From assembly GCF_902459465.1 (NCBI RefSeq), contig NC_047074.1, positions 7,316,001 to 7,380,000 of the forward strand: DNA of 64,000 nucleotides. Direction: 5' to 3'. The notes beneath the pieces are model-generated. The model saw only the letters and a list, made by a program, of their open reading frames with translations. It ran no database searches and was not told the origin of the DNA. Both the position numbers and the translations under genes were made by a program. Below are positions 6,487 to 42,235 of this stretch, in pieces; positions within the stretch are counted from its first letter, which is position 1; every line of letters begins with the position of its first letter. The stretch comes from Asterias rubens (taxonomy: Eukaryota).

Positions 6487-8164
6487 GGGAGGGACTTTGT
6501 CACTGCGGTTATTTACCCAGGCCGGTGGGGAATTTTGTTTGTAGCAAACTACACAGATTACAAGATGACAATTGGTGTTGGGTTAGTTGTTTGCCTCTCT
6601 GCCATCGACCTCAGGAGCTAGAGATCTCTTTCTGATTAACGCTTTTTTCATGAGTCAGTGAAGATCAGCGCTTTTGCGATGCAGATGGTGAATATTGTTC
6701 AATTAACATCACACAGAATTTGTCCTATTTTTTCTCAGAGTTCATAAAAACCACAACTTCAAAACAGAGACAAAACAATGTGGAATCTTGAGTTCTTATG
6801 AGACATCAAAGCCCCTCAAGAAAAGATAAGATGAGATGAGTAATGTGATATTTTAGCCGGTAATACCCAAATTTCCATCAGTGAATCATCACAAACATAA
6901 ACCTCTCTTGGAAACTTATTACAAGAAGAACTTCTATAGAGTGAAAATGATGAACCGTCTCTTTCTTCTGCAGTATACAATTATATTGTTAAGAAAAATG
7001 CTGTTGACAAATTCACTGTCAAAAGTTAAAGCTGAAAGGAAGTCTGTCGCATGCCAAATCATGAATTTAATTGACTCTTTATGAGGAATAATCTGAGGGG
7101 AAAAAAATCAATTCAAACAACCAATCTGTGTCCTGAAAGATATTTACCTGAAAATTCTGTGAGAACTCCGGACATAATGGAACATTGTGGAAGTTATAAG
7201 CGACTCTTGAAGACGGGGGCTGCAAGCCTGACATTTTGAAAAGAAATTGTCCAACAACTTGGAACAATTTTCCTTGACTAGCTTCTGATGAACACTCTGT
7301 TATAAATCCAGTGTAACAAAGACTGTGGTACATGAATAACTGATCCATGGTTATCATACCATTTTAAATCATCTCTAAACAAAACACAATATTCTATTGA
7401 TGAAACGGGTGAATCGATTATATTAAATACGGACAAGTTCATATATATCTTGTTTTCCTGATGCAACAGGTACCAAGTCTCAACAACTGCAATTTTCAAC
7501 AGTATCACAGACATGAAATTTTCCTTAATGTGGCTTTTTGTCCTCTTTTTTAGGTTTCTACCTTGAAAATTTTCCCCCACTTTACATCTTAACCCCCTAA
7601 AATATTGAACAAGTGTTGGTTTGGAAGGTCCCATACAAGGAAATATAATCAGCTACTAATGGACTGCGGATGAACAGAAACTAAAACAACTTGGATTCCA
7701 ATTTACACATACAGCTCTCCATTCATTAAGGTTGGACTGATACTAGGCCAATGCCCTTATGACACTGGCTCATTTGGTATTTATTATAAAGAGCAGTTCC
7801 TCAAATAATACCACTAAACCGAGACAAAAACTAGCTCTGAAATGAAATTCACACATCCTGTTTCCTTTTTTGAAAGGGCCAGAAATATAAACAAGAGAAT
7901 TTATACATATAGATATGGCGGACACAATGCTCAACACTATAAGGTTTGGGTAAATTTGTGCGTATTGACTATAGAAATAGAACGTGTGTTTTTTAGTGAA
8001 GTGCGCATTTTTTTTAGGCGACACAGCGTTTACACGTAAACCTTTTGACCACCAACGTTTATGGTGAGCGTAACATCAGTCACCACGTGTGACGCGCGTA
8101 TCAGGTCCGCCATACCTCAAAAATGCTTATTGGGATGATGGGGTGGCAAATAGAAATAGTACAA

Positions 8165-22230: not shown

Positions 22231-23334
22231 CACACAATACACATGTTTGTACCCGCAAGTTGACTATTTATTTATACTTTCTTCCTAGTGAGCCAAAATC
22301 TCTGAAACTATTCCATGTTTGATCATCACTAAAAACAGAAACACTCTCGTGATCTGAGAGAGACACTCACCTGATCTGAGTAACAAATCGGCGGCTCATT
22401 CATATCCTGCATGAGTGGTGGCGGAGGATGATGGTGAGTATAGTCCAAAGGCATGGAATACATGACGAGTTTTATAACTTTGTTTGTTTTTAAATTTCAA
22501 ACCAATAATAGTTCTTTAGTGGAGTCTAGCTGTCCACAATGGGATTTGTTCTTTTCCAGTAAGCAAAGACGGGATCCTAAAAAAGGCAGTGTACTCTTGA
22601 GTTGCTATGATGTGGAGCTACCACCATGCGCTACTGTACAACCAAACAGTCCACTGTGTGGAGAGTTAACGAGCGACCGGCTCTTTGAACACGCATGAAA
22701 CCCCTGTTCACTGTAGACTCCACGTCTGGACTTGCCGACAACAATACCAAACAAAACCACCCACTAGGTCTCGCAGTTTGGTCTGCCTCTGACACACACA
22801 CACGCACACCTATCACACGTCCATGTATTCTATCACACAACTCTTCCCATAAAAAAAAGGCAGAGTCCTATTTTCTATTCTCCCAACCCTTTTTGATGGA
22901 TGGTGAAGACTAACGTATACATGAAGTCTCTTTGTTATCAGTTGGGGCTGTCTCACCCAGCAATGCTGAGAGGTGGCGACTCCAAACACCAATATAGAAA
23001 TAGACAATAAGGCCATCACTAAATAGAAAATACAAAATTCATAGAAATTCAAGTTTTATGTTTGTTTGTGAACACAACTGGGTCAGGGTATCCGTGGTGA
23101 AGAATCAGTGGCTATGAGTGCTGTCTGTCTCCCTCATGCATATCAAGACAAATTATCCCTGGTTAATCAAGGTTAGTTATCAATCCACCCAACCTCCTTC
23201 TCTACTCTGCTGCCAATCACCACAGACTAAATTAACAATCCAAGGTAAACATGGTTGTGACAATGGGCCAGTGATACACGGTGCTTTGTTCTTGGCATAC
23301 CCAATCATGGCAGAGCGATCATCAAGTGTCGAGA

Positions 23335-28425: not shown

Positions 28426-29242
28426 CAAAAGAAAAAAAACCTGTAAGTTTTGAAGGAATACTGATCAAGATCTTGGGAATTCCTTCAAGAAAAAAACTCA
28501 TATCTACCTAAAAAGTTCCTTATTATAACAACACTGCCTCAAATACATATAGCACATGAGCAAATCAAAATATATTCATTGGCAACTTGAAAAGTTGTCT
28601 TAACACATGTAGTTATATCACGTTCAAAAGCTTTCCCAAAGTTATAAAATGCTAGAAATTTCCTGGAAATGCGGACTGAAAAAAGAAAGAAAGGTGGATG
28701 ATAATAGTAGCATGTGTACAGACAAATAATAATATGGCTCGAACAAGTGAGCAAAGCAAAATGAGGGAGGGGGGAGGGACACGACATACATAATGAAAGA
28801 TTGTCAATGTCAGATGAGAATTAAGGATCTGGTAAAGCGATTTCATTCTGCAGTACCTAATACACCAATTACCTGTTAACCAGCTGTGCACCTTACTAAA
28901 TATGTGCAGCCTTACTGACCTCTGACCTCCAGGGGTCATATCCAAAGATGACAAGGTCGAGGTTAATATGAAAATGTCACTGACATCCAACAGAGATAAG
29001 TTCCTGGAATAGATGTTTACATGGTCCCTAACTGTCTCCGACCAAACAAAAAACATATTTGGTTGTATTTTTATTATTATTAAAACCAGTCTGAAACGAC
29101 ATAGGCGGAAGTCTCACTACCATCTACAGTGGAAAGAACTTGAAAGCTTTTTGCCAATAGATTATAAATCATTTCTATATTGCATCCTGTTGAAAATATG
29201 TTTAAAACTATTTTATAACAAACTCTCTTGGGAAAGGAATAC

Positions 29243-29589
29243 CTAAAGGCACTGTACCCTATTGGTAATTACTCATAATAAAGTTTAGAATAAAAACTTA
29301 CTTGGTTATGAGTAATGCAGAGCTGTTGATGGTATAAAACATTGTAAGAAACGGCTCCCTCTGAGGTAACAGTGTTTTTTAGAAAGTAGTAATTTCTCAC
29401 TAAAATATTTGCGTTGAATTTGAGAACTTAGTTGAGGTTTCGAATTCAATCATCTAAAAGCACACAACTTGTTTGACAAAGGTGTTGCTCTTCCATTATT
29501 CTCTTGCAACTTCACGACGACCAATTGAGCTCAAATTTTCACAGGTTTGTTATTTTTATGCATGTGTTGAGATACACCAGTGCCTTTAA
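29243..29589. mobile_element. Kolobok-type MITE family A with subterminal deletion
   Basis: CTAA-AGGCACTG...CAGTGCCT-TTAA. Shares its right TTAA with the next element. Confidence 0.85.
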
Positions 29590-29970
29590 AGGAACAACAG
29601 AATTGGTCAGACACAAAATCGTGAAGATCACAGATTTACATCAAACTTACGTGGTCTAATGATGATGATAGTAGAAAATAACCCTTGAAATATTTCTGTC
29701 TGAAATGTCATATTTGATGAGAAATAAATAATCTAATTTCACATTTGGAGTTTATTGCTCAGTGAGAGTTTTATTCATTTTTTTGTTTGCATCAATGTCA
29801 TAAAAAAAAGTGTAATTAGGTTTTTCACTATTTTCTCGTGACCCAGATGGCCGATTGATCTCAAACTTCTACAGGTGTGTCAGTTTATGAATATGGTGGA
29901 CTACATAAAGTGCTTACACTGCCAGCCACTTTTCTTTATTAGCAAAAACCAATTCTGTAATGTTCCTTAA
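29586..29970. mobile_element. Kolobok-type MITE family C
   Basis: TTAA-AGGAACAACAGAATTGG...CCAATTCTGTAATGTTCC-TTAA. Reverse complement of 36217-36587. Confidence 0.88.
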
Positions 29971-32900
29971 ACTACCAATAAACTCTCAGGAATGTAGCGG
30001 GTCCAAAGTAAAGTCCTAATTGTGTCAACTGAGCCATCATCACAACATAACTACAGTGTGTCTTATCAGATGAAAGTTGATTTCAAACATCAATGTTTCT
30101 CAATCAACTGATCAGCCTATCCATGATTTTGCAATTCATCTGTTCTGTCTTGCTTTCTACTCACCGACAATCAATTCACTTGTGCACTGGCCTCCCCACA
30201 ATCAAGAAACATTGTCTGCTTCTCTCAATTTAGTCTTCCAAGCTTCTAAAATGGATTTGACAATCTTCAGTATTTGAAACATAATATTGCCACCATGACC
30301 AAAACAGTTCTCACAGTACAGAAACGTTCTCCAAAAGGATAATCATTACGGCCCTCACCAACAGATCCATGCCCTTGAGCATTCACAAGCAACTTAGGCA
30401 CTAACGCGTGGGAAGGGCTTTTACTTCAACTTAAGGCAATATAACATCACAGACTGGGACAAAAGGCAGTCACAGACCAGCCACAGACGGAGAAAGAAAG
30501 AAAGAAATCCTTTGCTTTTTCACAGGAACTACAAAGGAACGTTGTTGCTTCTTTTGAAACGGCCTGGCACTCCTCTGGGACAATTAACAGCGTATATCTT
30601 TTATTTGTGTCTGGGCCAAGACTTGGACAGCACGGCCCGTGGGGTTTTCTCTAACAGAAACAGGATAGGTCTAACAGGTTTTTTGTACTTTTTTTTCCCG
30701 AAATCAAATTCTCACTCGTTCAGTTTCTCTTTATGAAAGTTCTTTCATCGTTTGCCATTCCCTCGGTTTAAGAGGGAACACTCTTGGCGATAAGCTGACC
30801 CGAGATTCAAAAACCTGTCAAATAGCATTTCACTGGTGCATCAATATTCAAACTCTGTTCTTCTCAATAGAAAAGCTTAGGGTCCGTATCTGACGTCTTG
30901 GTTACCCTGAAGCGTACAAAGCAGGAACAACAAGATTTGCCGTTGAAATTCCTGCGTGTGGGGGCCGTATAAAAACAAGCACAATGAGAAAGGAAAAAAA
31001 GGCATTGTGTAGTTTGTGGTAAACTTCTTTTTGCTTTCGTAAAGAGATTTAGAGTTTTCACTTTTAGCAGTGAACCTTGCAAGAATTCACACATTTGTTT
31101 GTATACCATGAAAATAATGTTTGTGTGCTGGGATAAATTTGTTTCAAATTCATGAAGAATTTTTCACAAATCTGGGTGAGTAGATTCTGATATATTCTGA
31201 TTCATTACTGTGGCTAAAAACTTAACCAAAACTGTGTCTAAGAAACTAACGAAAACTTTACAAAGAAACCCACATATACCCTAACTGATTTCTATGATAA
31301 ACAAGACATATATTTCTTCATTTTCTATGTTCGTTGTTTGATTATTGACAACAAAAATATTTGTCTCCAACTTCTGATCTACAAAGGTAATGGGAGAAAG
31401 CCTTCCAATTATTCAAACAAGCTGGTTACTATATGCTGAGAACAATCGTTCAAAACAATTTATAAATTGGAGGGGCCCAAAATCCCTTTCGCTCAGGTAT
31501 AAGGCCCAAAGAGGCTTAGAAAACTTCATCATGCACTGGGCAGCTGCCATAGGCGGTTTGAATAAGAACACTTGCCATTGGTCTCCTGTGCAGTAATAAG
31601 AATTAAACATCAATAAATTAAACAGCCAATGAAATAATTTGTTACTGCCGAGTTATCCGCTAAAACGAGCATAAGAAAAAAAACAAGGATTTAAAAGCAG
31701 GAAAAAGAAGTTTGTGTGAACTTTATTATGAGCTTTTCAGCATTTGGAATGTCCATGAGTTTTGTGCTTGCGTGTGTGGCTCTAAAAATGGCAGATAATG
31801 GGAAACTTCCACACCCTACATGCAGAGAATGTCCCCTAAACAACCTATTTCTGCAACCAAAATGTCACATAAGAATTTAGCTTACTGAAAACACTAAATT
31901 ATTCATTTTCCTCAACATTTCTTACCCAAACAAGCTAAAAATTACCAGTTGTGCTTTAGACCGGGACAAAAAAAGTTGTAAAAAAAATGTCTATGAAAGC
32001 ATGGCTAGCCATGTGCGACGACTTCACATGTTTCGTTTGTGTTTGGCTGTATGCAACTTAGCGCGGAGAAATCATAAAGCGTGGAAAATCTGCGCACCTG
32101 TGCACAGGTAAATCCCAAATGGTTGGGTAATCAGTGCTATCACGTAAAGCACCAATACATGCTTGACCTTTTACTATTGTACTCTGCAGAGATCAGACAT
32201 TCAAGTTTTCATTTGAACAAGTTATTATGTTTTCTGAGCAATATTACACCACTATGTTTTGATTGATAATGACATGAAATAAATGTATCTGAAATGAAAA
32301 AAATTCCCATCCATTGCATCTGGTATAGAAGACACCAAACAAACTTGGTGCATAAAGTAAAATTAAAAGTGGAACGTTCGCAAATAATGCACGTTTTAAT
32401 ATTAGCAGGTACAACTATATACTTATTTTCCTTTTTTGCCAGGACACTTTGTGTTTTAAGTACTCAGTACTTCCCCGAATCCCTGTAAACAAAGCCAACA
32501 CCTATCACTTTGATGTTACATTAGTTCAAAGAGCTGCTGAAGAATGGACCATTGATAAACGGAGTAAATTCCAACTGTTTTTCTTCCTAAAGAAACGGGT
32601 TAACAGACCAATGTATTGTAGAGTTGGTCCCCGGTCCCAGGTAACTGTTTTCTTTCAGAGGTTTGAAGTACATGTACAATCTAGTAGCGACGGCACAGTT
32701 GTACGGTTTAACATCAACACTTGAGCACATATTCAAAAGGGGGCCACTGGCCCAGATGATTGCTATCAACATTTAAACAAAATTTCATCATTTTGACCAA
32801 GAACTTGTCCAGGGGTCGGGAACACTGACCTACAAAAAGTGAAGATTTGATGGAAGTACTGAAAACACATCCACAGATGTTGTTTTTATTGACTGAGCAG

Positions 32901-33225
32901 ATGTCTCCCTAAGACTGTACCCATGCTGCAACCATCATCATATTATTCAATAATCATCAAAAGTGATTCTCAATTACCAGGAGAAAAAAAAAAAACCCAA
33001 GTTTGGTTTCATTGATTTGAAGAGAAAGAAGACAAAATAGCCGGTCATTGGATACAATTTATTACCACAACCCACGAGTTAACATAACAATGTTTACAAC
33101 TTTTCCAGTCACCATGATTGGACATTTTTTCACCAGAATATTCAACCTATTTCTAGAGACCAGCCATGACGGCTCAGACTAGAAGATGTCACTTGTCATA
33201 CTTCTGTCATATGTCTGATAAAGTA

Positions 33226-33435
33226 AAGCCCCTTTCACACAAACACAATTTAGCAAGGGTCCTTTGCTAAATTGTAACAATGTTGTACAATTTTACAAAA
33301 TGTACCTCGTGTAATAGGACAGCAATTTGTCTACCGTCCAAGTTCTTTTGCAAAAGCTGGTCAAACCTTGCTATATTTTACATCTATGCTAAAATTAAGC
33401 AAAGGACCCAAGTTAAATTGCTGCTGTGTGAATAT
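33226..33435. mobile_element. Degraded MITE (AAGCCCCTTTCACAC end); arm fragment also at 17358-17412
   Basis: Internal inverted match CAATTTAGCAAGGGTCCTTTGCT / AAGCAAAGGACCCAAGTTAAATTG. Confidence 0.5.
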
Positions 33436-34129
33436 TTATCATAAGCCCATGCTAAGTATAAAAAATACCTGTGGATCAAATACATCTAGCAAATAGTATG
33501 TTAATGTGAATGATCCTGAATGGTTAATTGCTTATAATGTAAAAGTTTCAGAAAACAAATGTTGTAATAACAAAATTATTAAAACAAAAACAATCACAAA
33601 TATTGATATATAAAATTTATGTGAATCACAATCTCTTATTGCGACACAATCCAAATCTTTACAAAAACCGCCCGAGGAAAAAAGCAAACAAACAAACTGA
33701 AAACCCGTAGATTGACGGTGGGAATCAGTTGATGAAAGCATTAAACATTCCATAGATATTGTTACTTCATCGGCATCAGGAATTCTCAGAGGTAAAAGGT
33801 TAAAGGTTATCAAACTGTATCTTGAAAACTCTCTAATCCAAAATGCAAATATCAAGCAGGAAAAAACAACATTCAGAAAAAAAAACGTTGTTTCAGTTTC
33901 AGGGGCAAATGTTGTCATGCATATTGAAAAAGATTACATTCAAGAAATCTGCGATGAACATTGAATGTAACACAGATTTGTTGATGATGGTCAACATGGA
34001 GCAAAACTTCTTCTTTCATTAACTACTTAAGCAGGTGAGCTGGGGGGGCGGGGAGAAACAACAAGTTGTTGGCTTGGCAAAATAACAAACAATGAACTCA
34101 AGAAATTGGAAACAAAAATGCGGACCTAC

Positions 34130-34291
34130 CTTGAGGGAATCAAAGCAAGCTGTGACCCGTCCGTTCTCCACCACGACTGACTTGGCCGGGTGCGCGTACT
34201 TGCACTCGGTGTCCGATCTCTTGCATGCACCACGCTGGAACTCACGACAGGCCTCGAGCATAAGCCACTGTGTGTCTCTGACTACAGCCAT
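34130..34291 (-). CDS. mbnl: Muscleblind-like protein, first coding exon (54 aa: CCCH zinc finger 1 plus start of zinc finger 2)
   Basis: Translation [54 protein letters not shown] matches the muscleblind N-terminus (RDxxWL.LE.CREFQRG.C.R.D.ECK.AHP...ENGRV.ACFDSLK). ATG at 34291-34289. Phase-0 donor AAG|GTAGGT at 34130/34129, the intron position conserved in fly and vertebrate orthologues. Confidence 0.95.
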
Positions 34292-35013
34292 AATGAAGCG
34301 GCAACAACCGCCACAGTCCAAGTTGGCTGGATCAGCTCAATAGTGAGGGAGTCTCAAGCACTAGGTTCGCTGGCACGTACTCACAATTCACGTGGTGTTT
34401 TCCACAAGGGGGGGGGGGGGGGTGGCAAGGGGGGTTCTAGAAGGGGGATTTATTGTTGTTATTGATGGCTGGCTTGGTTATGGGGCAGTGCTTTTTCTGT
34501 ACACTGGGGTCACAGGTCAACGCCAAGGCTTCCTTCTTGTGGCCGGGATTCCGAGTGAAGTTCAGTGAATGAGTGATTTCTGTCTGGCAACAATGCAGTG
34601 CACACCGGTACACAACAGTAGCAAGTGGTACACACTGTGCATGAGTGCTCTCTGTGTCACACCAGGCAAGTCTAAGGCAGCATGTAATTTAACGGGCTGG
34701 CAAGCTGACCACGCATAGGGGGTATAAGAAATATTGGAGGAAAAAAACAACACACGGCAAGAACAGTGAGTTTTGCTTGGGGTTGCCAAATACTAAAAAA
34801 AACTTCAAAGTTCAGAGGCCATCGATTGACAAATCTCAGGTGGCGGTGGGAACTTCATGAAGCAGGGTCGTCCACAGCGATGGTAATGGTGACGTCAACA
34901 ACATAGACAGGCAAAAAATACTGGTGATGCTAATGCTATAAAACCCAAATTATTTAGTCCATGAGCGCGGGCCGATTGGGTAAAGAAACTAGTAGCGGTT
35001 GGTAGCGTTGGTA

Positions 35014-35037
35014 GGCAGGCAAGCAGGCAGGCAGGCA
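35014..35037 (-). repeat. Six tandem UGCY units (CCUG-type tract) in the mbnl 5'UTR
   Basis: Plus strand GGCA GGCA AGCA GGCA GGCA GGCA. Confidence 0.95.
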
Positions 35038-36216
35038 AACCAGGGTTGTAGTGTGCAGTGTGTGGGTGGTGTGCTAAGAGAGAGCGGTAGGTTGTTGAAG
35101 GCAACGGCAGCGGGTGTTCGTTTCTACTGTCCTTGGACTTGGCCAGCCAGGAGCTAGAGTTTTATTTGTTTCCAGTCCTGTGGGGGAACACACAGACAAA
35201 AGACGGGCACAGGGGGAGAGGGAAAGAGACACAAGAGAAAGGAGAGAAAAAAAGAAAAGCATGCATGAGCTCAAGTGAGGTGAAACTAAATCAAAAACAG
35301 CAAGCAGCATTTTTTATCAATCCGTTACCAACCTTTGATGTTGCCCTTTTTTACAAGGTCAGAGGCAAAGCTTTTTGTATTGGCTTCAGCTTATAGACAG
35401 AGTTTGACACCTCTCTGGTCCAATAAAATCAAGGATAGCATTCTTTCTGTCAGGTATAAATGCACCGGTTGGGGCTTAAAATCTGACTTACATATTTTTA
35501 TACTTAGAACAACACAATCGTGGATTTAGTTTATCCAGTCAAATGGAATAACAAACCCAAAACACCTTGAATCTAAACATGAATTACTTCTGCTTGTTTT
35601 TCCGCATGCCCAAATGTTCCCCATCCAAAACCAATCATGAAAACAAATTCGAGAGACTTTTCCAACAAAGAATTGTTCAAAAGAAAAAGAAAACCCACCC
35701 TTGTACAACATTTTGCATTTTGTAAACCATGCATGATAAGAAATGAATGCAGGATCTGGAGTGGAGCACATGTAAAATAAACATGTTATCCAGGGAGACG
35801 TCCCCCTTACTACATGCATGATGAATTTAAACATGAAGTCTAGGTACTATACATCATCCAATGTTAGCAACAAACTATTTAAATAAGCTATGTATGAGAT
35901 GATAGCCCTAAGAAATACATTTCTAAAATGTGTGTTTCAAATGTTTAATAAACCGAATATGAAATTCTCTTTTTGAAATCTTGTTCTACTAAATTAACTT
36001 ATAAAAAAAAACAGAACATCTTTTCATTAGTTATTAAAGGGAAAATACTACAAATTTATTATGAATAGGCATTAGTCTTGATGGATCAATCTTTGACCTA
36101 GACCCCACGTGTACCAATCATCACTGCATGATTTTCATTACTTGGAAAAGAGGGCCAGGCTATATTTGTTCCCGCCAGCCTTGGTTTTCTCACAATGATT
36201 TGAAAAAAAAATAAAC

Positions 36217-36587
36217 TTAAAGGAACATTACAGAATTGGTTTTGCTTACAAAGCAGTTGCTGGCAGTGTAAGCACTCTATGTATTCCACCATATATACAC
36301 TGACAAACCTGTAGAAGTTTGAGATCGATCGGCCATCTGGGTCACAAGAACATAGTGAAAAACCGATCACACATTTTGCATGACATCGATGGAAGACAAA
36401 AAAATGAATAAAATGCTCCCTGAGCGATCAACTCCAAACGTGAAATTAGATTCAGATTTATGACATTTCAGTTATAAATATTTCAAGGGGTGTTTTCTAC
36501 TATCATCATCATTAGACGGCGTAAGTTTTAAGTAAATCTGTGATCTTCACGATTTTGTTTCTTACCAATTCTGTAACGTTCCTTTAA
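36217..36587. mobile_element. Kolobok-type MITE family C, opposite orientation to 29586-29970
   Basis: 20-bp TIR AGGAACATTACAGAATTGGT / ACCAATTCTGTAACGTTCCT with TTAA TSDs. Confidence 0.9.
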
Positions 36588-36851
36588 ACACCATGATAAC
36601 AACATCATTGTCACTTAAGACTACACGCCCTTCTAACCGGCAACATACTTTTTCCAGTAAAAAAAGTCGTATGCAATCCAATGGCTCCTGACAAGAAAAA
36701 AATGTCTGTTGCATTTTTGTTGCTAGAACTACACCAATGAGAAGTGTTCCCATTTCACAGGCAACATTTAACCCTCCTCTGATGACTAATGAATGGCAGA
36801 AAACCAAACAAACTTTCACACACAGTTATTCTTGAAACACACTTTTGAACA

Positions 36852-37219
36852 TTAAAGGGAAGGTACACGTTTGGCAATTACTCAAAACAAATAATAACTT
36901 AAAAACTGACTTAGTAACGAGCAGTGTAGAGCTGATGGTACATGTAGTATAATACATTGTGGGAAACGACTCCCTCTGAACTAACACAGTTTTTGAGAAA
37001 GAGGTAATTTCTCACAAAAAAAAAGAAGAAAATTCTAGCTAGAAGTCTTTTCTTCCTATCTGAAAGCACACAAATTCGTCCAACAAGGGTGTTTTTTCTC
37101 TCATCATTTTCTCACAAATTCAATGACCAATTGAGCCCAAGTTTCACATATGCTTGTTATTTTACACCAAGTGAGGACACTGGTCTTTGACAATTACCAA
37201 ACGTTTACAATGCCTTTAA
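36852..37219. mobile_element. Kolobok-type MITE family A, subfamily A2
   Basis: TTAA-AGGGAAGGTACACGTTTGG...CCAAACGTTTACAATGCCT-TTAA with a family A body. Confidence 0.85.
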
Positions 37220-38591
37220 TTGCTTATAAATGCACTTTCTATGGTAGCTTTGTTACATCCTTTCCACGCACACAAAGTCACGGTAGACTGCTACGCTTCT
37301 AGCAGATTTAAGACATTTTTTGGTGAAAAAAAAAAGACTAATCCAAAGCTTCTATTGAACCCAAAACAAGACAATCTAAACATCAGAAAGTAAATCTGAA
37401 CTGGGGAATTACCCATGATAAGAGACCAGTTTTCAATAATAATGTTTCTTTTCATCAAATAGACCAACCCACGACCAACTTGCATCTCAACATTTGATAG
37501 GACCTTATTGTCTAAATTGGACTTTGGAATACACTTTTAAAATAAATCAACAACTTACCCACTGTTTACCTATTATATTTAAAACAAATTTCATAACAAT
37601 AACAATAAACCTTAATTACAAAATTGAACAATCCTCTCTGCAACACCAGGAATAAAAAAATAAAATAAAAAAAATATTTCTATGATAAAAAAAAATAAAA
37701 AAACCACCAGCAGTGGCCAAAATAATGAATTAAGCAGGTAATTCAACAAGTATAGATTCTGATTATATAAATGTGTATCTATTCCAATCACTTAAACTAT
37801 TATAATATTATGAGCGCTGTGGTTGAATCTCTCTCCACAGTGGTCAAGTCTAGACAAGCTGACCTAACATTCAAATGAACCCGTTGCCATGGTTGCAGCC
37901 GGGTAGGGTAAGAAAAGAAGCAGCAAAGAAAACCTGGAGGCAGGTCAACCACCTGACCAGGGAAAAAAAACCTCAGGGGAAACCTCGGAAATACCCATCA
38001 AAACGGATCAAATTGAAGACACTATCTAATTTATCTTCTTTTTCTTTAAAGTCCACGAGTGTTGGAGCATACCCCAGGGTTGAAATACATGCAAAACCGA
38101 TTGTTTGCACGGACCAACCAACGGGATAGGGAAACTTGCTTTCAATTGTACAAAAGGAGAGAAAAATGCGGGGGGGGGGGGGGGGGGGGGAAATGTAATT
38201 AAGGGAGACCTGTGTGTACAGTGTCAAGCAAACTGAATACTTTGCCTATGAGTGCCCAGAGGCATTTGTGGCCATTGTGGCTGTTTAACATTGGATAGCA
38301 GCAATTCCTTGACCTTATGAGGACAATGACTAGACCACTTGGGGGCACAGACTACTACTGCTACTGCCAAAGTATCTAGCCACACAGTGCTAATAACTGC
38401 TTATTTACATGAGCAAAGTGGCCCCTTGATATGTTTAGAGAACTACTAGTCTATTCTTAATCACTTTTAGATCTTAGACTGTGGCCCAAGGTTCCTCAGG
38501 GGGTAAGCCCATATTGCTAGAAGACTTAGTGTCCTCCAAACATCAGCCCCTTCCAAGCCTTATCAAAACCCTGATCCAATCTTCAATGTCA

Positions 38592-38947
38592 TTAAAGACA
38601 CTGGACAAAGACCAGTCTTCTCACTTCTCAACATATGCATAAAAAAACATGTGACAATTTGAGATCAATTGGTCATCGAAGTTGCGAGAGAAAAATGAAA
38701 GAAAAAACACCCTTGTCACACGAAGTTGTGTGCTTTCAGATGCTTTATTTCGAGACCTTTAAATTCTAAATCTGGGGTATCAAAATCAAATTCGTGGAAA
38801 ATTACTTCTTTCTCGAAACATTACTTCAGAGGGAGCCGCTTCTCACAATGTTTTATACTATCAACCTCTCCCCATTACTTGTTACCAAGAAATGTTTTAT
38901 GCTAATAATTATTTTGAGTAATTACCAATAGTGTCCACTGCCTTTAA
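38592..38947. mobile_element. Kolobok-type MITE family A
   Basis: TIRs with TTAA TSDs. Confidence 0.9.
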
Positions 38948-39138
38948 TCTCAAACCACCAAATGTATTCACAAAGATAAAATAATCCTCACAACTTGTTG
39001 TGGCCAAGCTAGCAAGCCCTACAGTTACACAATACTATTCAACAAGTAATGTTTAATTTACCCTAGGAGTGTTTGAAAACAGGGTGGTTCCATATTCTTG
39101 TGCAGAGATGACAAGAACATTAAAAGGGTCCTCATCTG

Positions 39139-39380
39139 GGCCATATATCATAGAGGTGCTAAGCACAACAATTTGTTTAGCATGGAATTTGTGCCTTGAT
39201 AAAAACAGTATTACCAACAAAAATTCCATGTGATTTTCAGGATAAGCAAACAACAGCTGAATACCCGAGTAACAAGCAATATGCAACACATGGAAATTTG
39301 GTTGGTAATCCTGTTTTTATCAAGGAAAACATTTTATGCTAAGCAAATTTTTGTGCTTAGCAGCTCTATGAAATTGGGCC
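39139..39380. mobile_element. Harbinger-like MITE with about 95-bp imperfect arms
   Basis: GGCCATATATCATAGAGGTGCTAAGCACAA... / ...TTGTGCTTAGCAGCTCTATGAAATTGGGCC. Confidence 0.7.
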
Positions 39381-39743
39381 ATGTACAAATTACTATATTG
39401 AGCTCTAATTCAGTTTGTCAATAGAAACATTCCACACAAAAACAACATCAACAAGTCTCGAACTAGATTGGCTTGAAAGCAATATGTTCAACAATCGTCT
39501 TTTCTTTACAATAAGAAAATAGAACATAGGCCAATCAAAGATGGAACAAACAACAAAAAGTCAAGTCACGTTTTAAATATCTGAGACCAAATTCACATCT
39601 GAAACAGGATGATGTTGAAATGAGAATGAAAGTTTTTGGGGGTAGTTGATTAGCAGGGTGAGGACGTCGTTCGGTGTTAAAAACCACCAGGTAGAATCGT
39701 TATCTCTGTGCTTCATGACCGCTAAAGGCCAACATGTAGAGTT

Positions 39744-40068
39744 TTAAAGGCAGTGGACACTATTGGTAATTACTCCAAATAATTTTTAGCATAAAACCTC
39801 ACTTGGTAATGAGTAATGGGTAGATGCTGATGGTATAGAACATTGTGAGAAACGACTCCCTCAATGAAGTAATGCAGTTTTTAAGAAAGAAGTAATTGTT
39901 CATGAATTTGAATTCAAGACAAGGTGTTTTTTTCTTTCGTTATCATCTCGCAACTTCGACCACTGATTGAGCTCAAATTTTCACAGTTTTTTGTTTATGT
40001 ATACGTTGAGATACACCAAGTGAGAAGACTGGTCTTTGACAATTACCAATAGTGTCCAGTGTCTTTAA
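39744..40068. mobile_element. Kolobok-type MITE family A, central deletion
   Basis: TIRs with TTAA. Lacks the central palindrome. Confidence 0.9.
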
Positions 40069-40451
40069 GGTTTCTCAGATTGAACCACCAATCCCCATAA
40101 TCAAAGCTGTCTTTATTGGACCAAAGTGATCTGAAATTAAGCCCAGATGTTACACACGCACTTGCCCCTTGAACATTCTACTGTAACTCCCACATTACCA
40201 ACTCACTGACCTTCCCAACTAGGGTTAGGCTGCCCAGGGCAAACGGGTATCCTTACCCTATGATTGGTTCAAAGCACATCATGTGACTTGAGATGGAACT
40301 TCAATCGTAAAAACATCTGTGTGTTCTGATGGTCAGGCCAGTCGGGCCATCATCAGCTTTGTAATCCAGACCTATATTAGGCTTCAAACTAAGGGATGGG
40401 GCCATGGGGGTTAGAGTCCAACCACATTACAACTCCTGTCACTTCTCTTTC

Positions 40452-40839
40452 TTAAAGGCACTGGACACCTTTGGTAATTGTCAAAGACCAGTCTTCTCAC
40501 TTGGTGTGTCTAAACATATGCACAAAATAACAAACCTGTGAAAATTTGCGCTCAATTGGTCGTCAAAGTTGCAAGATAATAATGAAAGAAGAAAAAACTC
40601 TTGTCACACAAAGTTGTGTGCTTTCAGATGCATGATTTGGATACCTCAAAAATCTAATTCTGAGGTCTCGAAATCAAATCCGTGAAAAATTACTTCTTTC
40701 TCGAAAACTACTCCACTTCAGAGGGAGCCGTTTCTCACAATGTTTAATACTATCAACCTCTCCCCATTACTCTTTACCAAGAAAGGTTTTATGCTAATAA
40801 ATATTTTGAGTAAATACCAATAGTGTCCACTGCCTTTAA
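40452..40839. mobile_element. Kolobok-type MITE family A
   Basis: TIRs with TTAA TSDs. Confidence 0.9.
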
Positions 40840-42235
40840 AGTGCTGTCCTGTGAATAGGGCTTATGAGCTCATGTGTAACAAACTGAAGTCATATAACAA
40901 GTCAACAAAAGTCACTCTATTAACTTTACTGGAGTTTTAATCAATCTTAGTTAACGACCTAGCTCACAGTCAGGTAATGCATAGGTTTCTCTTGATTTCT
41001 GTTTTAGACGTGAGTGGTTAATAATAGCAGGTTTCCACACCTGTCCATTGACATAACAGAGACAACAAAAGTGCTTCATTTTAATGAGCCATGTTAATCC
41101 TTGCTATGGCAGCTGTTTTTAACAGGTTGTGTAAAAAGTGTGATATTCGGTCTTAAATGTTGAATAAAGCTTTATTGTCAGCCATTTCACAAAAGGTTTA
41201 TTCCAATACCTCTATAGACAGTTGAATGGTGGAGCAATCAGTGCTGATACACAATTACTAAGCACAGTCAAGTTTCAATTGGCTTTATTAGTAAAAAAAA
41301 ACCAGGGTCCCTTGTCAAAGCTTGTCCAACATTGCTACATTTTGTCAGTGGTCCGGACCTACGACAAATTCTTACACTAGCGGAAGTTTTGACCAAGGAC
41401 GTGGGCTACATCATCGTGTGAAAGGAACCCTTGTTTATTGAACGACGTCCTAGGTGAAAATGCCCATTCAGCGCATGCTATTGTTGGTGCTATCTTGTCC
41501 AACTATGGTGATCAGGATTACCAATTCGTCATATCACTCTCATGGCGCACAAGGGTTGTTAGTTTTTTTTTTAACTTTGCAGTGTGAAAGCTCACAAAAT
41601 CAGTCACACATAGTGATAACAAATAAACAATCCACGCTCATAAATTTTGTAGCAAGGGACACTGGCTACGTTTTTGCAGTCTGAAAAGGGCTTTACAGAT
41701 CTGCTAATCTCACACAACTTTTTTGTTCTTCCACAACAAAGAGCTAAACTAAACATCCAGACAATACATCATGAAGAAGGTGACAATAATTGAAGAAAGC
41801 CTTTCCACCAGACAAATAAAACCCACACATCACACCCTGCGAAGAAAGGGCGTGACAATTACCTATAAATCTCATCATAAGAGTCAGCAGGCTCGTAAAT
41901 ATCTCTCTCCCTAGTGCTTGGTCATGGTGTCCTTATTCAACATTCATTTCAAAAGATTTTGTTTTATGGGAGGTTAGTTCAAATTTACAAGAGGGGGGGG
42001 GGGATTCAGGGAAGTAGTAAACTAAATGTGAAAATTGAGACATAAGAGGTTGAGGGGTTGTTAGAAACGCTCGTGATTTGTAGCTCCTTTTTGCAATGAG
42101 AAGGAAATGACAAAGATATAAACCTAATGACTGCCTTGATGTCTTAGCTTTGTGCACTATTGGCCCCAAGAACCTTTCTTATTCTTTTTCTTTATTTGGC
42201 CATTAAACAATAACAAATACGAGCAGACAGTTTGC

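Follow-up and report, generated by a model that had tools for sequence, protein, structure and literature searches.

The 64-kb window analysed here (the whole stretch G000:C14:7316001-7380000 of Asterias rubens, in which positions are counted from its first letter unless a contig is named) carries a 1048-nucleotide (nt) exon of the muscleblind gene mbnl, which lies on the minus strand. The features of the locus are collected in Table 1. RefSeq isoforms of A. rubens named 'muscleblind-like protein' map to the contig of the window, and the gene, and presumably the exon too, is therefore already annotated. The 54 amino acids encoded by the exon match the zinc finger (ZnF) 1/2 structures of human MBNL1 and MBNL2 in the PDB with E values of 3e-26 to 4e-25, the alignment ending at ...CFDSLK, and they are identical to the RefSeq MBNL protein of A. 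amurensis. Pfam zf-CCCH_10 reaches 36.7 bits against a cut-off of 27, and zf-CCCH is also above its cut-off. The exon carries the sole MBNL zinc finger of the window; two other six-frame matches to the bare CCCH spacing were rejected as non-coding sequence. When an echinoderm MBNL protein was used as query, every genome match fell within one locus of the 417.6-Mb assembly. A phase-0 donor after DS(L/I/M)K is common to brittle star, sea urchin, vertebrate, deuterostome-like and protostome-like sequences, and vertebrate genomic open reading frames (ORFs) read FDSLK/V at the donor position (here and below a slash marks the splice site), so the position is ancient. The explanation that we favour, and that taken as a whole we regard as quite probable, is that the exon is the sea-star orthologue of exon e1 of human MBNL1 and of exon 2 of fly mbl, in a single muscleblind gene.

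The initial annotation of this DNA had described a single exon of 1048 nt with a long 5' untranslated region (5'UTR), the start codon and ZnF1, ending at FDSLK, and this is borne out by the sequence and by RNA contigs. As we read the sequence, the acceptor at 35177 is ...ttcccccacAG/GACTGG and the exon's 3' end reads ...TCC CTC AAG/GTAGGT. One small correction has to be made: the C-x7-C of ZnF2 straddles the exon boundary, so the exon also supplies the first cysteine ligand of ZnF2. All seven upstream ATGs of the 886-nt leader open short ORFs of 2-26 codons. The main ATG, at 34291, has A at -3 and G at +4.

In order to follow the splicing of the exon, we used Logan contigs of two A. rubens RNA runs from different studies (X1 and X2), aligned to positions 32400-37900. 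The contigs fit the exon with 0 or 1 mismatch and their matches end at the exon boundaries (34129, 35178), beyond which they continue with sequence from outside those positions, and RNA depth is zero in both flanking introns. Since the introns have zero depth and contigs cross both boundaries, the runs represent RNA and the exon is an internal one, spliced at both of its sites. Transcription that starts within the exon, which the initial annotation had named as a refutation, is thereby excluded, the contigs crossing the acceptor (35177/35178) into a further 347-372 nt. A gap in the A. rubens contigs at 34371-34534 coincides with a poly-C tract and is spanned by raw reads of A. amurensis, which we recognised by fixed differences matching the locus used for comparison in that species (L020). 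The poly-C tract (34409-34425, in the 5'UTR) is 3 nt shorter in A. amurensis and breaks the contigs of both A. rubens runs. The exon is expressed in A. amurensis too, raw reads of run X21 covering it about 6-20x and those of run X22 about 0x.

Very long introns had been claimed on both sides, which we could confirm downstream and only bound upstream. The next coding exon starts at G000:C14:7296715 (cttacgcag/GGTCGC..., GRCTREDCKYLHPP; translation GRCTREDCKYLHPPPHLK..., beginning GRCTRE), which puts the length of the downstream intron at 53,414 nt. On the other side the upstream 5'UTR exon or exons comprise at least 347-372 nt in total and lie more than 2.7 kb from the exon. They were not found by the ratio of observed to expected CpG over 179 kb upstream (extended coordinates 35178-214000), where the peaks were mostly repeats. 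The top upstream peak (1.26; G000:C14:7475100-7477000, L012:5100-7000) was rejected as a promoter, as it belongs to a young repeat (about 450 nt) whose copies are 90-92% identical, occur on many chromosomes and gave more than 16,000 first-look candidates.

We then considered YGCY, the motif of MBNL proteins (Y, pyrimidine). The exon holds 32 of these motifs compared to 25.5±3.6 in dinucleotide shuffles (48 of 1000 shuffles reach 32), and its first 300 nt hold 14 compared to 8.7±2.0 (11 of 1000 reach 14). The densest 200-nt bin of the window lies near the 5' end of the exon (Table 1), as does the densest 500-nt bin, with 19 motifs against a window mean of 4.95±3.06. The first 280 nt of the exon fold less stably than all 200 of 200 shuffles (z=+2.63). 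A C-rich 5' end that is, by this prediction, unusually single-stranded would suit a protein landing pad. No dense MBNL sites were seen in the flanking introns, whose first 500 nt hold 14 and 18 YGCY per kb, and which over 1-2 kb hold 10-13 per kb, against a window mean of 9.9.

The comparison with A. amurensis separates the two sides of the exon. The exon as a whole is 98.1% identical (20/1048 differences), with 98.0% in the 5'UTR (18/886) and 98.8% in the coding sequence (CDS; 2/162, both synonymous). The first 1 kb of the upstream intron (35178-36177) is 97.2% identical (28/1000) and that of the downstream intron 95.3% (47/1000); the median of 72 half-kb intron chunks is 94.5%. The 5'UTR is thus less divergent than the downstream intron (18/886 versus 118/2130 differences, Fisher p=8e-6), and so is the upstream kilobase (p=5e-4), the two regions diverging 2-3 times less. 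We conclude from this low divergence that leader and upstream flank are both constrained, and the upstream kilobase is a candidate for a conserved regulatory region within the intron. Between the two species, the 100 nt that precede the acceptor and the 100 nt at the start of the exon are identical.

Isoforms that bypass the exon are found among RefSeq models of both sea stars. The two alternative 5' coding exons of Table 1 lie within the 53-kb intron, and their donors join the ZnF2 exon (GRCTRE), which gives MBNL without ZnF1, and two A. amurensis models begin at a methionine inside exon 3, also without the ZnF1 exon. The alternative exons place a cysteine 10 or 6 residues before the next one (…LCPEFSQNFQ/GRC and …ICYSDQ/GRC, respectively), and might in this way rebuild a ZnF2-like finger with altered spacing.

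Table 1 Features of the mbnl locus and RNA contigs aligned to it. Positions are those of the window unless a contig is given. A slash marks a splice site.
Feature	Position	Strand	Remarks
mbnl internal exon, 1048 nt	34130..35177	-	most of 5'UTR, start codon, ZnF1, first Cys of ZnF2; from sequence and RNA contig ends
Upstream intron, 3' end	35178..35320	-	pyrimidine tract of about 90 nt, several YGCY motifs, AG acceptor
Donor GTAGGT	34124..34129	-	AAG/GTAGGT after 34130, phase 0; RNA contigs depart from the genome here
5'UTR portion, 886 nt	34292..35177	-	7 upstream ATGs
Coding portion, 162 nt / 54 aa	34130..34291	-	MAVVRDTQW...VTACFDSLK
ZnF1, C-x7-C-x6-C-x3-H	34190..34249	-	Pfam and spacing pattern
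YGCY cluster, 13 motifs per 200 nt	34913..35112 (exon nt 66-265)	-	densest in the 64-kb window; 200-nt bins
Six consecutive UGCC/UGCU units	35014..35040	-	CCUG-type tract; kept in A. amurensis as pure (UGCC)6
Alternative 5' coding exon MITMDQ...SQNFQ/	7148..7357	-	A. rubens RefSeq isoforms X2-X8; tblastn 100% identity; donor CAG/GTAAAT
Alternative 5' coding exon MYSMP...YSDQ/	22371..22463	-	A. amurensis RefSeq isoform X5; tblastn 97% identity; donor CAG/GTGAGT
Inverted repeat, nearest bracketing pair, upstream arm	36217..36588	.	390 nt aligned, 84% complementary to 29585-29971
Inverted repeat, nearest bracketing pair, downstream arm	29585..29971	.	syntenic pair in A. amurensis, 78% complementary
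Codons after FDSLK in a putative circle	35154..35177	-	DWKQIKL + TAG; arithmetic only
RNA contig, run X1 record 1 (1258 nt)	34403-34129		continues 983 nt past boundary
RNA contig, run X1 record 2 (1016 nt)	34535-35178		continues 372 nt past boundary
RNA contig, run X2 record 9	34129-34370		continues 841 nt past boundary
RNA contig, run X2 record 10	34466-35178		continues 347 nt past boundary
Exon-like MBNL zinc-finger match	G000:C14:7280364-7280561		
Exon-like MBNL zinc-finger match	G000:C14:7260987-7261193		with stops
Exon-like MBNL zinc-finger match	G000:C14:7260121-7260291		
Exon-like MBNL zinc-finger match	G000:C14:7258042-7258206		

These features can be compared with those of a well characterised exon. 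Human MBNL1 e1 has 1049 bp, contains most of the 5'UTR and the N-terminus and has exceptionally long flanking introns; its 5'-most part has YGCY motifs to which MBNL1 binds, according to crosslinking and immunoprecipitation, and the exon is skipped when MBNL is high; three promoters, bypass from other promoters and small amounts of an e1 circular RNA (circRNA) have been described (Konieczny et al. 2017, PMC5389549). The sea-star exon resembles human and mouse MBNL1 e1 in size, in its content of 5'UTR, start codon and N-terminal zinc finger and in its 5' YGCY cluster. It further shares with human e1 at least one very long flanking intron, isoforms without the exon, several alternative 5' starts and the donor after ...CFDSLK. 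Unlike human e1, it is bypassed by isoforms that use alternative coding exons inside the downstream intron. The architectural match to the circularising exon of fly and human, which the initial annotation had put forward, is supported, and the human exon is closer than had been realised there, given the lengths of 1048 and 1049, the 53-kb intron and the 5' YGCY cluster.

We propose that MBNL itself would land on the exon's C-rich, unstructured 5' end, where the tandem UGCY tract lies. Use of the exon would then fall at high MBNL, either through skipping or through a switch to the alternative 5' exons, as in human e1. The mechanism with the best support is such a control of exon use of the human e1 type, acting via the 5' YGCY platform, a circle likely being a side product.

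Several results weigh against this proposal. The YGCY motifs exceed their number in dinucleotide shuffles by a modest margin, which is largely due to a single microsatellite-like tract. Internal promoters, instead of regulated skipping, may be the origin of the exon-less isoforms. The long-leader exon is also not common to all echinoderms, judging from a sea-urchin gene model (contig L002, 822-1803) in which the acceptor lies just 15 nt before the ATG (ttttttaag/ATAAAAGGGGACCACATG) and a separate 5'UTR exon lies about 690 nt upstream, with donor TCATCC/GTGAGT. In the alignment of sea star and urchin the CDS alone could be aligned, with no similarity in the UTR. Finally, the contigs of the two RNA runs traverse the linear junctions unbranched, and a circle is therefore not dominant in those libraries, which may be poly(A)-selected. 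The first three of these points would be expected of an ordinary first coding exon without self-regulation, whose YGCY tract would be a microsatellite evolving neutrally within a C-rich UTR; the tract is indeed a simple repeat in which one unit-internal base differs between the two Asterias species. However, we consider such an ordinary exon unlikely, as the 5'UTR and the upstream intron are clearly better conserved than the downstream intron, and as the exon matches the experimentally characterised human e1 jointly in its size, in where its motif cluster lies, in its long introns and in its bypass isoforms (PMC5389549). The urchin contig has a YGCY peak of its own at its first 300 nt.

The self-regulated exon that we favour would also be back-spliced at some level, giving a circular RNA that contains the start codon (AUG circRNA), as in fly and mammals. 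In Drosophila, circMbl derives from mbl exon 2, accounts for more than 70% of the signal of that exon and has been reported to undergo translation that begins at the shared start codon and ends at a stop right behind the junction (PMC9352392, PMC5387669). Like the fly exon, the sea-star exon is internal, with 5'UTR and start codon, the ORF of a circle would stop soon after the junction and the host gene has alternative 5' exons. In contrast to the fly introns, which carry many MBL sites, the motif density of the sea-star introns is near background. AUG circRNAs as a class have long flanking introns and gave no evidence of translation (Stagsted et al. 2019, PMC6487579). The sea-star exon has in common with them the start codon and a flanking intron that greatly exceeds 6.5 kb, the threshold marking conserved circles that do not depend on repeats (PMC6487579); membership in the class requires a back-splice junction, and the exon is accordingly a candidate on the basis of its sequence. 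Circularisation is a reasonable prediction from homology, and we expect that back-splicing would, on balance, be detectable.

A stronger version would have the exon efficiently back-spliced to a circMbl-type RNA under promotion by MBNL, in a conserved autoregulatory circuit whose circle is abundant relative to the mRNA. In its favour are the homology to exons that circularise in fly and mammals (PMC9352392), the 53-kb intron downstream of an AUG exon, the YGCY cluster within the exon and five inverted repeat pairs (340-400 nt, 76-86% complementary) that bracket the exon within 7 kb and also occur in A. amurensis. However, equally many bracketing inverted pairs are obtained for 13% of random placements in the window, and the complementarity of the nearest pair, which is 84% in A. 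rubens and 78% in A. amurensis, is kept no better than its sequence. The YGCY density of the flanking introns given above and the unbranched passage of the contigs through both linear junctions also speak against an abundant circle, and in human muscle the e1 circle is no more than a minor product (PMC5389549). No back-splice joint 34130-35177 was present among the joints listed for 32400-37900, a search in which the high-copy repeat at 36080-37367 masked low-depth joints, whether linear or circular, 139 joints and 1203 loose ends lying beyond those listed. We regard an abundant circle as doubtful. In an exact scan, a 22-mer of the back-splice was absent from metagenome contigs; the control, a 23-mer of the linear exon2-exon3 junction, was absent too, and this collection thus holds no Asterias mbnl RNA.

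The repeat at 36080-37367, in the upstream intron, is covered by raw RNA reads of A. amurensis at a depth of 100 to more than 1200, and its coverage by A. rubens contigs is far higher. A 38-nt core (37163-37200) is all that thousands of reads have in common, their sequences diverging to either side of it. Such a pattern resembles the conserved centre of a highly abundant, expressed family of the type of short interspersed nuclear elements (SINEs) or miniature inverted-repeat transposable elements (MITEs). Rfam gave no match within 29000-41000.

In order to judge whether a circle could be translated, the reading across its junction has to be considered. The initial annotation had predicted a circular reading of 61 amino acids, ...FDSLK-DWKQIKL-TAG with the TAG at 35156-35154, which is correct as arithmetic and as such a property of the sequence; an endless ORF is not possible in the circle because 1048 is not a multiple of three. 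A circle translated from the shared ATG across the junction would yield the protein MAVV...FDSLKDWKQIKL. For such a product one may cite that the ORF stays open across the junction and stops after seven codons, that fly circMbl has been reported to be translated likewise (PMC5387669) and that the tail codons are identical in A. amurensis. However, a stop within seven codons is the chance expectation, and identity at 2% divergence is uninformative. The 886-nt leader with its seven upstream ATGs would not favour translation either, the systematic study of AUG circRNAs saw no evidence of it (PMC6487579), the product would consist of ZnF1 and an orphan ZnF2 ligand, and the circle itself is a prediction. 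Translation of a circle is thus speculative, and we think it very improbable; a circle, if made, would most likely be a non-coding by-product or decoy and not a template for the 61-amino-acid peptide. A query with the 54 amino acids for a called ORF across the junction was uninformative, as it returned zero sea-star short ORFs of any kind. The tail that follows FDSLK in the UniParc urchin model P0056 (FSWMILINL...) was dropped as a candidate for back-splice read-through, being absent from L002 and belonging to an old gene prediction without a contig. The initial annotation knew of no description of such a circuit in this lineage, and our literature search agrees in that it found no paper on starfish circular RNA; echinoderm work on circRNA covers sea cucumbers only, in a survey without mention of muscleblind.

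Further downstream in the gene, G000:C14:7258042-7280561 contains several separate exon-like matches to MBNL zinc-finger pairs (Table 1), which may be alternative or duplicated ZnF3/4 cassettes. The RefSeq isoforms have two different C-termini.

Muscleblind proteins, the factors that are lost in myotonic dystrophy, regulate splicing during development, and the setting of their level has been studied mainly in flies and mammals. The shared size, motif placement, long intron and bypass isoforms suggest that the autoregulatory design of this exon is ancient in deuterostomes. More tentatively, and with less than even confidence, we suggest that the whole module of MBNL self-regulation, consisting of an AUG exon of about 1 kb, a 5' landing pad, giant introns, bypass isoforms and back-splicing, was in place before echinoderms and vertebrates diverged and that sea stars still make a circle from it. 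If this were true, circMbl/circMBNL1 would be among the oldest conserved circular RNAs, at about 600 million years. The sea star would in any event offer a simple system with a single gene, free of the redundancy of MBNL1/2/3, for finding which part forms the conserved core, be it skipping, alternative promoters or the circle.

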